From the NCBI RefSeq assembly GCF_000142905.1, contig NW_013657656.1, forward strand, positions 52,327 to 116,326: 64,000 nt of DNA. Reading direction: 5' to 3'. Shown here piece after piece: positions 33,721-38,135 of this stretch (position 1 is its first letter; every line of letters begins with the position of its first letter). A program made the translations under genes and the position numbers. This stretch comes from Thecamonas trahens ATCC 50062. Its lineage: Eukaryota > Protista > Apusomonadida. The notes below the pieces were generated by a model. The model made no database searches and was not told where the DNA came from. It saw only the letters and a list, made by a program, of their open reading frames with translations.

Positions 33721-35420
33721 ATGTCGGCCTTTGTTAACGACTGGACAAACAACCTCAACGCGTTCGACTCTGCGCTCGATACCAAGGTCATCCCGCGGTG
33801 GAAGCGGAAGGCCATGGAGAAGGCACAGCAGTCGAGCGCCAACGCGTCGACGTCGGCCATTACCGCCTCGTCGCTCGCGACCACTCCCTCCCGCGGCACC
33901 AAGCGCCGTGGCTCTGGCACCCCACAGGTACGCTCTTCCCCCTCCCCCGTTCCCTTGAACATGCTCTACTGCAGTGCCAAGGGCAACTTGTCCCCCAAGG
34001 CCTTCATCCCTGTGGAGAGACTCACACGCTGCGGGAGGGGCGACCAACGGACGGACGAATTTTTCAAACTTTTGCGATGGACGGAAATATTTTTCCTTCA
34101 AACTTTCGCGCGCGCGCTCGACACAACGCACAGTGCGATCGGTTTATCCCCAACCGCGCGGCGATGGACATGTCGCTGGGCAAGTTTGCGCTGCAGGAGA
34201 ACAACCCGACCCTGGGTGAGGACGGTAGCGGGGCATACTCGCCGGCCAAGGAGGAGTACCAGCAGACTCTGCAGGAGACACTCCTCAACGGTCGGACCGA
34301 GTGCGCCAAGATCCTGGCGTTCAAGGCCAAGGCGCCCGCGCCGCCGGTTGGCTACCAGAACTCGCTCAAGGTCCTGTACTCTCAGAACAAGGCGTCTGCC
34401 GGGCGGAAGCGCAAGGTCACGCGCCACATCCCGCAGGCGCCCGAGCGCGTCCTCGACGCGCCCGACATGCTCGACGACTACTACCTCAACCTGCTTGACT
34501 GGAACAAGCAGAACATCCTCGCCGTTGCTCTTGGTCAGACCGTGTACCTGTGGAACGCCGAGAACGGATCCATCACCGAGCTCTGCACCACCGAGGAGCC
34601 GGACAACTTTATCACCTCGCTGTCTTGGATCGAGGACGGCTCGTACCTTGCCGTCGGTACCAACACCGCCGACGTCCAGCTGTGGGACACCGAGGCGTCC
34701 CGCCAGGTCCGTTGCATGAAGGGCCATCATTCGCGCGTCGGCTCGCTGGCGTGGAACCAGTTCATCCTCTCCTCGGGCTCGCGCGATTCAATGATCTTCA
34801 ACCACGATGTTCGCGTCGCCGACCACCACATCGCCACGCTCGCCTCCCACACCCAGGAGGTCTGCGGGCTCAAGTGGTCGCCGGACGGCACCCAGCTGGC
34901 GTCGGGTGGCAATGACAACCTCCTCTGCATCTGGGACATCAACGGTGGTGAGTCGCCCAAGTTCACCCTCAACGACCACTGCTCCGCCGTCAAGGCTCTC
35001 GACTGGTGCCCGTGGCAGGAGAATCTTCTGGCGTCCGGCGGCGGGACCGCTGATCGCTGCATCCGCTTCTGGAACACAGAGACCGGCAACTGCCTCAACA
35101 CCATCGACACCAAGTCCCAGGTCTGCTCCCTCAAGTGGTCCACCCATCACAAGGAGATCGTCTCCTCGCACGGATTCTCCCAGAACCAGCTTATTGTCTG
35201 GAAGTACCCGTCCATGGTCAAGATGGCCGAGCTGACCGGCCACACCTCGCGCGTCCTGCATCTTGCCGCTTCGCCCGATGGCGAGACCATTGTCTCCGCC
35301 GCCGGCGATGAGACGCTCCGCTTCTGGAAGTGCTTTGCCCGTGACTCGGCTTCGTCGGCTGCGGCCACCAAGCCTGTCATTGACAACCGCGGCCTGCGCC
35401 GGAACGTCAACATTCGCTGA
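33721..35420 (+). CDS. CDC20: APC/C activator CDC20/Fizzy; exons 33721-33927 and 34134-35420
   Basis: GT-AG phase-0 intron 33928-34133 joins to the C-box CDRFIPNR; KILAFK (Mad2-binding); DAPDMLDDYYLNLLDW; seven WD40 repeats; C-terminal IR tail. Confidence 0.97.
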
Positions 35421-36332: not shown

Positions 36333-36671
36333 ATGTCTGTGGTGTCGTTTGAGAAAAAGGTGCTCTACACGTACCTCGCTCTTCTGTTCGGTAGCCTCCT
36401 CCTCCTGGCGGTGGTCTTTGATTTGGTGGCCACCTTGGAGTACGAGGATCCGTCGGCTATGCCCTCATCATATGCTGTCTCACTGCTCTTGGTCCACGGC
36501 GGGAGTTTCTATCTCTTCCTTCTCGGCTTTGTCTACGCCTGCGAGACTCAGGCAAAGTCGCACGTCTCCCTCTCCCTCGCTGCCCTCGGTCTCAACGTCA
36601 TCGCTCTCGTCGGCCGCATCACAGTCACGTTTATGTTCATCGACTATCGCCCCACACAGTATGCCGCGTGA
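36333..36671 (+). CDS. TMEM262: Small 3-TM membrane protein (112 aa) resembling TMEM262/CATSPER-eta
   Basis: Three hydrophobic helices. Near gap-free match to my recollection of the TMEM262 pattern: F.K....T..AL.., M...Y.V.L, G..YA..T..K, L.LN.....R....F..I[DE]YR. Confidence 0.65.
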   Translation: MSVVSFEKKVLYTYLALLFGSLLLLAVVFDLVATLEYEDPSAMPSSYAVSLLLVHGGSFYLFLLGFVYACETQAKSHVSLSLAALGLNVIALVGRITVTFMFIDYRPTQYAA

Positions 36672-36768: not shown

Positions 36769-38135
36769 TTACCCGCTGCTACTGCTCGCGTCGTACGCAA
36801 CACTCACAGGCACTTCGGCAGTAAGCAGCTCCATAGTTGGCGGGCCAAACGCGTACTGCGAGTCCACGCCCGAACCGACCGTGCTGTTGTACGCCGGCTC
36901 GATCGATCCAATCAGCATTGCGCCGGAACCGGTCCCGTGCGACTCGCGGCCGGTCGATTCAAGGTACGACGTGCTCATCATGGTGAGGTCTGCGTATGCA
37001 TCGTCTGCAATGACCACCTCGTCGGACGAGCTAATACGGCGCCGGCGACCGGCGGCCACATGCGCCCGCTCGGCTGTGTTGAGCTCAAAGATCTCGCCCT
37101 GCAGCCGCTGCAACGACTGCGCCGTCGCCAGTCCGACCTGCTCGCCGGCCGCCACATGCGCCCGCTCGGCTGTGTTGAGTTCAAAGATCTCGCCCTGCAG
37201 CCGCTGCAACGACTGCGCCGTCGCCAGTCCGACCTGCTCGCCGGCCGCCACATGCGCCCGCTCGGCTGTGTTGAGTTCAAAGATCTCGCCCTGCAGCCGC
37301 TGCAACGACTGCGCCGTCGCCAGTCCGACCTGCTCGCCGGCCGCCACATGCGCCCGCTCGGCTGTGTTGAGCTCAAAAATCTCGCCCTGCAGCCGCTGCA
37401 ACGACTGAGCGGTCGCCACGCCCATGGGAGGCGGAGGCACACCGCCTGGTCCGAGCAGCTGCAACGACTCTGCCGCCGCCGCTGACGACGACGCCGATGA
37501 CGACGACGACGCTGTGGATGACGTCGAGTCACCGCCCTTACTGGCGAGCTCTTGCAGCCCAACATCTGTGTAGATCGCCACCGACTTTTCCGCACACTCA
37601 CTATCGGTGGTGGCCATGATCCGCTCGCCGCGCGAGACTACGTTTGCGAGCGAGACGTGATTGCGGAAACCGATGACGGCCGCCACCGTAGCTAGGCCCT
37701 GCACCACTGCAGCTGCCAAAATGCCGGCAAGTGCGTTGTCCGACGCTTTGGCCACGCCCTTGCCCGGACTCGTGACCAGCTCGCTCACTAGCAACGAGAG
37801 GAGGAAGACCAAGACGAGAAGTGGGACGAGCTCGGCGACCACAGCCAGCCGCAGCAGCCGCTCGCACCCGCGCCAGAGCATGTGGTCGTCGTCGTCATAG
37901 AGCGCTGCTGCGAGCACAAAGGACGCGCCAGCCATCCATGCACCCCGGCGGCGGCGGCCGGCCGATCAAACCGCGACATGCTCATCACCCCGCGGTCGTC
38001 GCCGCTTCCGGACGACAGGGCAGACTCGAGGGTGAGACCGATGAGTACAAGGCTGATCATGGCTTGTGCCACCACTCCGGCCACTACGGCCCATCGTGGC
38101 GCCACCAGCGTGTCAAAGTCAATGAAGCACACCAT
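36769..38135 (-). CDS. 4-TM membrane protein with a cytoplasmic 32-aa repeat tail; frameshift at 37943-37946
   Basis: ORFs 37788-38228 and 36769-37935 join with one extra G (..FDRPAAAAGGAWMAGASFV..). The join is supported by alignment to the paralog at 40490-41428. Confidence 0.7.
37049..37418. repeat. 96-bp coding tandem repeat, ~3.8 near-identical copies
   Basis: GCCACATGCGCCCGCTCGG.. at 37055, 37151, 37247, 37343; encodes ATAQSLQRLQGEIFELNTAERAHVAAGEQVGL. Confidence 0.97.

Follow-up and report, generated by a model that had tools for sequence, protein, structure and literature searches.

A short gene in the Thecamonas window

The window, by which we mean the whole 64,000-nucleotide stretch of Thecamonas trahens DNA that was analysed, holds at positions 36333-36671 of the plus strand an ATG-initiated open reading frame (ORF) of 112 codons followed by a TGA stop. 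Its translation is identical to the one quoted in the original prediction, which had described a 112-aa protein with three transmembrane (TM) segments and had proposed it to be a homologue of TMEM262, the eta subunit of the CatSper channel; three helices were recovered both by hydropathy and in an AlphaFold model (Table 1). For brevity, we refer to the ORF as the eta gene. Thecamonas trahens is a marine apusomonad, a biflagellate that branches beside Opisthokonta.

Table 1. The eta gene and the parts of its protein, in window coordinates (residues are numbered on the window protein)
Feature	Window position	Strand	Basis
Complete single-exon CDS, CatSper-eta/TMEM262 homologue	36333..36671	+	ORF/translation, dN/dS, single genomic locus, TMEM262 homology
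Residues 4-36: N-terminal amphipathic stretch (SF-x-KK-x-x-Y) running into TM helix 1	36342..36440	+	Model helix, hydropathy peak 15-33, family-alignment motif
Residues 46-72: TM helix 2, with H55/G65/Y68/E71 and motif H-x-x-SFYL-x-LLGFVY-x-x-E	36468..36548	+	Model helix; residues invariant in A3
Residues 75-101: TM helix 3, with membrane-embedded N88 and R95	36555..36635	+	Model helix; both invariant in A3
Residues 104-107: C-terminal D-Y-R-P motif immediately past TM3	36642..36653	+	Family consensus F-x-DYRP; 7eeb_M alignment

Because the surrounding DNA, at ~63-65 % GC, is rich in overlapping chance ORFs in other frames, we tested the coding status of the eta ORF directly. An orthologue, P0001, is carried on four marine metagenome contigs (L002-L005) and shares 76 % protein identity with the Thecamonas ORF. 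At the nucleotide level the two are 73 % identical, with the differences distributed 24/11/57 over codon positions 1/2/3, and the comparison yielded a pS of 0.60, a pN of 0.15 and a dN/dS of 0.14. The eta ORF is a real gene under purifying selection. A non-coding frame arising by chance, of a kind that the many overlapping ORFs show to be expected at about 63 % GC, can be dismissed with near certainty in view of this dN/dS, the near-saturated synonymous change, the codon-position split, the 68 homologues across eukaryotes and the confident fold prediction described below. The N-terminus MSVVSF is conserved in P0001, where it likewise opens the protein; translation therefore likely begins at ATG 36333, and the gene consists of a single exon. 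Upon searching the whole 28.7-Mb genome in six frames with the family profile, we obtained one matching locus only, C24:88659-88991, which corresponds to window 36333-36665 (E 3e-38). The exact ORF protein is absent from a 15-billion-protein collection, although entries derived from the window may be masked there; the same collection does contain AMSG_06718, the CatSper-beta of the same genome, from NCBI, UniRef and EukProt. Hence, the eta gene appears to be unannotated in Thecamonas trahens, and the earlier guess to that effect appears right.

The flanking genes were inspected in both Thecamonas and the marine relative. Upstream, at window 33798-35420 (+), lies a gene for a CDC20/Fizzy WD40 protein (PF24807, E 1.4e-135), about 900 bp before the eta start. 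The convergent downstream gene, at window 36769-37935 (-), encodes a multi-TM protein without an informative Pfam domain and is homologous (E 8e-15, 32 % identity) to L002:1570-2526 (-), which occupies the same position and orientation beside the marine eta orthologue, indicating conserved microsynteny. Since the alignment begins only at residue 92 of the L002 protein, the model of the downstream gene in the window may miss an upstream exon or N-terminal part. Inside this gene, at about 37049-37418 of the window, a 32-aa (96-bp) unit occurs four times, and repeated peptides appear in both the plus- and minus-frame translations. The upstream neighbour of the marine relative appears, from its sequence, to be a leucine-rich-repeat protein and not a CDC20/Fizzy gene, so that synteny is confined to the downstream side. 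Several consecutive Ion_trans domains are found on the same contig at G000:C24:24591-28744, about 24-28 kb ahead of the window, probably a four-domain Cav/Nav-type channel that forms no part of the eta finding.

Homology to CatSper-eta

Searches with the single ORF sequence returned noise only, both in Pfam (Tetraspanin and PMT_4TMC at E~0.7) and in the PDB (a peptide transporter at E 0.24), and the case for homology therefore rests on profiles, several independent ones of which agree. Neighbours of the protein in the ESM Atlas were rejected as relatives, as shuffled sequences reach the same scores. Using a profile of the ORF and two ~75 % relatives, P0001 and P0002, both found by word search (A1), we searched 177,635 distinct PDB sequences with HMMER and found the eta chains 7eeb_M and 9ubw_M to be the only ones at E<=10 (E 0.12), with profile positions 3-107 aligning gap-free to residues 9-113 of 7eeb_M. 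The near-gapless alignment that the original prediction had described with mammalian TMEM262 was thereby reproduced, without gaps, on the 7eeb_M sequence. Against 1.84 billion cluster representatives, A1 found 68 proteins at E<=1e-3 (HMMER), most of them 105-130 aa long and aligned end to end. The profile matched the sturgeon protein P0061 at E 9.8e-5, an entry named 'transmembrane protein 262 / cation channel sperm-associated auxiliary subunit TMEM262-like', and P0061 in turn matched mouse CatSper-eta (7eeb_M) at E 4.9e-13; the chain from the ORF profile through sturgeon TMEM262 to mouse eta is therefore closed.

Deeper profiles led to the same chain. With a 38-member family alignment (A2), 7eeb_M was the top PDB chain at E 6.2e-11 over 97 ungapped residues, the next chain standing at 0.28. 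A strict profile, built against profile drift from 15 members at E<=1e-10 only, of which all the named ones are protists (A3), likewise placed 7eeb_M on top, at E 1.2e-3 with the next chain at 1.6. When A3 was compared by hhalign with an alignment of ten animal members (A4), the two matched with 99.6 % probability (E 7.6e-24) over 113 columns.

The Pfam entry PF15837 is named DUF4716 in version.10 and TMEM262 in a newer release. A precomputed match to PF15837.11 is present on the ORF, P0001, P0002 and cnidarian members; it is weak and known only as E<=1e-3, the curated cut-off of the entry being 27 bits. With the 60-position model of PF15837.10, the ORF and all 38 family members went unmatched at E<0.06, and the curated threshold is thus not reached with this version; we consider the model too narrow as a test because it also missed the sturgeon protein that NCBI names TMEM262. 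The window ORF was missed in a six-frame search of the genome with PF15837. The one match that it gave, a weak one on C36 (E 0.05), was discarded as noise, sitting in another frame within a 467-aa ORF on the minus strand.

Predicted fold and conserved residues

Hydropathy placed the hydrophobic segments of the protein at residues 15-33, 49-67 and 85-103, and AlphaFold2, run on A2, returned a model with a pLDDT of 88.7 and a pTM of 0.75, whose three helices are those of Table 1. Because KK precedes TM1, the N-terminus of Thecamonas eta is probably cytosolic. The positions conserved in the family are P44, H55, G65, Y68, E71, N88 and R95, of which R95 is invariant in 38/38 aligned members of A2. 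Identical in mouse eta are G65, Y68, N88, R95, the E four residues after R95, and the terminal Y-R. Upon comparing the model with 350,542 PDB chains by Foldseek, we obtained 7eeb_M at rank 1 (TM 0.81/0.79, rmsd 1.9 Å, 102 columns) and 9ubw_M at rank 2, followed by a clear drop to a TM of 0.56 at rank 3. The eta match has a modest Foldseek E-value of 0.07, as one would expect of a small protein made of helices, for which the rank and the gap are what count. TMEM262 chains accordingly rank first in the PDB with the 3-, 15- and 38-sequence profiles as well as by structure.

These data bear on whether the resemblance could be convergent, with the ORF encoding an unrelated small three-helix membrane protein of TMEM262-like hydrophobic composition. 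Such a reading could draw on the noise-level TM matches that are all the single-sequence searches yield, on the ESM Atlas neighbours, which are unrelated bacterial hypothetical proteins at chance-level scores, and on the many folds that short helical bundles match. However, TMEM262 alone was singled out among the 177,635 PDB sequences, with the next hit ~10 orders of magnitude weaker; the alignments run end to end without gaps, and the residues G65, Y68, N88, R95, E and Y-R, counted among the polar positions, coincide; the hhalign comparison reached E 8e-24; the two eta chains stand at the top structurally, before the clear drop; and significant intermediates connect protists, cnidarians, amphioxus, sturgeon and mouse. 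We therefore regard convergence as very improbable. The ORF is a true relative of CatSper-eta/TMEM262 in sequence, size, topology and predicted fold, and the homology first proposed from the sequence is borne out by the A2 and A3 matches to 7eeb_M, the hhalign probability and 7EEB chain M as best structural match.

Comparison with mouse eta (7EEB, 9UBW/9UBX chain M) brings out what was kept and what changed. The two proteins are of similar length (112 vs 116 aa), have three TM helices after a short N-terminal amphipathic stretch, align ungapped over about 100 residues with common G, Y, N, R, E and Y-R positions, and superpose at a TM of 0.81 and 1.9 Å; both are encoded in a genome that also holds CATSPER1-4, beta, gamma and delta/epsilon. 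By contrast, identity in the structural alignment is about 22 %, and Thecamonas keeps the KK, DYRP and H55 of the protist/invertebrate consensus that were lost in mouse, where N-Y-R-E stands at the positions aligned to D-Y-R-P. The Thecamonas N-terminus, M-S-V-V-S-F, has no Trp before TM1, whereas in mouse eta helix H0 lies on the inner leaflet and its Trp3 stacks at and stabilises the eta-eta interface (PMC12799140). Trp3 is not universal, being Leu in human eta (PMC12799140), and because it is replaced in human too, we take it for a lineage feature and not a defining one. Finally, the Thecamonas protein comes from a unicellular biflagellate and mouse eta from sperm.

The TMEM262 proteins of non-mammalian animals (sturgeon, amphioxus, coral, sea anemone) are direct matches of the profile, with E-values between 1e-4 and 2e-8 in the search of 1.84e9 proteins, and have in common with Thecamonas the motifs K-K-x-x-Y, H-x-x-(S/A)F, LG-x-VY, N-x3-F-x2-R-x3-E and (Y/F)RPE. 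They differ in forming a clade of their own (100/99), and most of them are labelled 'uncharacterized' in databases. CATSPER-theta/TMEM249 is alike in being a small TM auxiliary subunit that was found via the CatSpermasome structure, is essential for assembly and contacts eta (PMC12799140, PMC10523455), but it is unrelated to eta, with two TM helices and a cytosolic domain, and the window ORF is not theta.

Distribution and phylogeny of the family

The animal members of the family include proteins from amphioxus (P0031), corals (P0030, P0037), sea anemones (P0066, P0070) and sturgeon (P0061). Fungal members come from the blastoclads Catenaria, Paraphysoderma and Sorochytrium and from the chytrids Rhizoclosmatium and Dinochytrium, and protist members from Ancoracysta, Diphylleia, Ceratiomyxa, Fabomonas, Trimastix, Paratrimastix, Rhodelphis, Spongospora and Mastigamoeba. 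The named members thus represent animals, chytrid/blastoclad fungi, Amoebozoa, CRuMs, ancyromonads, metamonads, Rhizaria, Rhodelphis and Ancoracysta. To our knowledge, each of these organisms has flagellated cells or stages, and none belongs to Dikarya, land plants or other aflagellate groups.

We built a maximum-likelihood tree from the 23 rows with an organism name or known origin, leaving out unnamed metagenomic and SRA-derived rows and entering long members with their C-terminal 125 residues. It recovered Metazoa (100/99), Fungi (77/76), the opisthokonts (90/90) and a group of Thecamonas with two marine sequences (100/100). The family tree follows the species tree, which fits vertical descent and not contamination or transfer. 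The earlier suggestion that eta predates animals was, if anything, too modest, as homologues occur in at least 9 major eukaryotic lineages.

Several members depart from the compact form. The fungal homologues P0016, P0017, P0020, P0022, P0026-P0029, P0032, P0035, P0059 and P0067 carry low-complexity N-terminal extensions of 100-380 aa, presumably cytosolic, which contain RRAS-x-x-x-N-x-x-x-PLG-I/L-RKLN and LPPNFGSHVQLF motifs that are absent from protist and animal members; these extensions may be a lineage-specific regulatory or trafficking tail. The idea that members of 210-495 aa are fusions with another CatSper subunit was rejected, their N-terminal parts being of low complexity and without a Pfam domain. 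In two sturgeon entries named 'TMEM262', P0081 (Huso huso) and P0082 (Acipenser ruthenus), TM helix 3 is missing and the protein closes with a short C-terminus of another sequence. Sturgeons have several paralogues, and the two entries represent truncated gene models or else isoforms.

Other CatSper subunits in the Thecamonas genome

The original prediction had tied its case to the presence of CatSper subunits elsewhere in the genome, and CATSPER1-4-like channels, beta, gamma and delta/epsilon were all found. For beta, a 1302-aa open frame on C30, 100 % identical to AMSG_06718, carries the CATSPERB_C match (8e-38); a word search started from this protein returned only three beta homologues. 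CATSPERG_C matched at 5e-26 and CATSPERD-E_C at 2e-32, both on C20. The CATSPERG and CATSPERD beta-propeller models and CATSPERG_Ig-like gave no match in the genome, blanks that do not show absence; the C-terminal models found gamma and delta/epsilon.

The genome holds 89 Ion_trans matches. Among the channels are four of a single domain, each with a different CATSPER1-4 chain as its best single-domain PDB match: L028 with CATSPER1 (161 bits), L035 with CATSPER2 (161 bits), L030 with CATSPER3 (176 bits, its top PDB hit overall) and L027 with CATSPER4 (160 bits). Where bacterial NaV chains were listed for these four channels, they scored 92-123 bits.

Two further observations concern these genes. 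The gene models of beta differ, the open frame (L045:1276-5085; G000:C30) giving 1270 aa from its first ATG as against 1182 aa in AMSG_06718; like mammalian beta, the Thecamonas beta ORF combines a hydrophobic segment at the N-terminal end with a TM helix at the C-terminal end. L024, considered as a CatSper channel, was rejected as a Shaker-type Kv channel.

Proposed role of Thecamonas eta

With a probability of about 85 %, we propose that the gene at window 36333-36671 (+) is the Thecamonas CATSPER-eta (TMEM262) orthologue and that its product is an assembly or stabilising subunit of a flagellar CatSper channel, a role assigned by homology. Mouse eta spans the membrane three times and touches theta on the CATSPER4/beta side of the channel, and the complex needs it both for assembly and for arriving in the flagellum; upon its loss, every CatSper subunit and the CatSper current are gone from sperm (PMC12799140). 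As shown in 2026, it is essential for assembly of the complex and forms a transmembrane eta-eta dimer interface (PMC12799140). By analogy, Thecamonas eta would insert with its N-terminus in the cytosol; the conserved membrane-embedded N88, R95 and the E four residues after R95, together with the juxtamembrane DYRP, would dock onto the TM helices of partner subunits; and the protein would thereby assemble or stabilise a flagellar CatSper Ca2+ channel, which may control the flagellar waveform.

The strongest rival, which we nevertheless think unlikely, accepts the ORF as a true TMEM262 homologue but places it outside CatSper in protists, for instance as a small flagellar or ER protein or as an assembly factor of another channel, with recruitment to CatSper in animals only. 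Against such a role, eta coexists in this genome with CATSPER1-4, beta, gamma and delta/epsilon, and, as far as we know, all named family members come from organisms with flagellated cells. In its favour, association with CatSper has been shown in mouse only (PMC12799140), and the co-occurrence of eta and CatSper was checked directly in this genome and, elsewhere, via the literature for apusomonads, flagellated fungi and animals. That literature reports CatSper from several of the groups that carry eta, namely apusomonads, blastoclads and chytrids, cnidarians, and amphioxus (PMC13358043), which again speaks against a separate role. The rival can also point to a co-evolution screen in which Catsperh did not cluster with the CatSper core (PMC10523455). 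This miss is plausibly technical, however, because a fast-evolving, often unannotated protein of 110 aa splits into narrow orthogroups.

Age of eta and implications

CatSper is the most complex ion channel known, and earlier work has divided its subunits between an ancient core (CATSPER1-4, beta, gamma, delta/epsilon, EFCAB9 and theta) and later additions. The screen mentioned above, published in 2023 and covering 1,256 eukaryotic genomes, found that theta co-evolves with the CatSper core across eukaryotes but did not recover Catsperh, whose orthogroup has a contrasting species distribution (PMC10523455). A published eta alignment covers mammals and 'several nonmammalian species' (PMC12799140), and our literature search on TMEM262/CATSPERH/DUF4716 found no report of eta outside animals. 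The family as such was already known; what is new is its Thecamonas member, and the place of eta in the ancient CatSper core, as opposed to the published screen that sets eta apart.

We conclude that eta arose before animals and probably dates back as far as the CatSper channel itself. Going further, the ancestor common to most or all living eukaryotes may already have had eta in its CatSper core, with retention only in lineages with flagellated cells; eta would then be no late vertebrate or mammalian add-on, and we would give this deeper scenario an even chance. If it is true, the eta/theta assembly checkpoint would be an ancient feature of the eukaryotic flagellum and not a specialisation of sperm, and the same would possibly hold for dimers or arrays that the channel forms through eta in the membrane of the flagellum.

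The case also illustrates how annotation and orthogroup methods systematically overlook small subunits. In addition, the diverse family alignment leaves few conserved polar residues (N88, R95, E and Y-R), which are candidates for the subunit interface. According to a recent preprint, functional CatSper has no heterologous expression system (bioRxiv 10.64898/2026.01.05.697741), and because of this a minimal ancestral subunit set would be of practical use. Eta in Thecamonas also makes CatSper assembly accessible to study in unicellular models.
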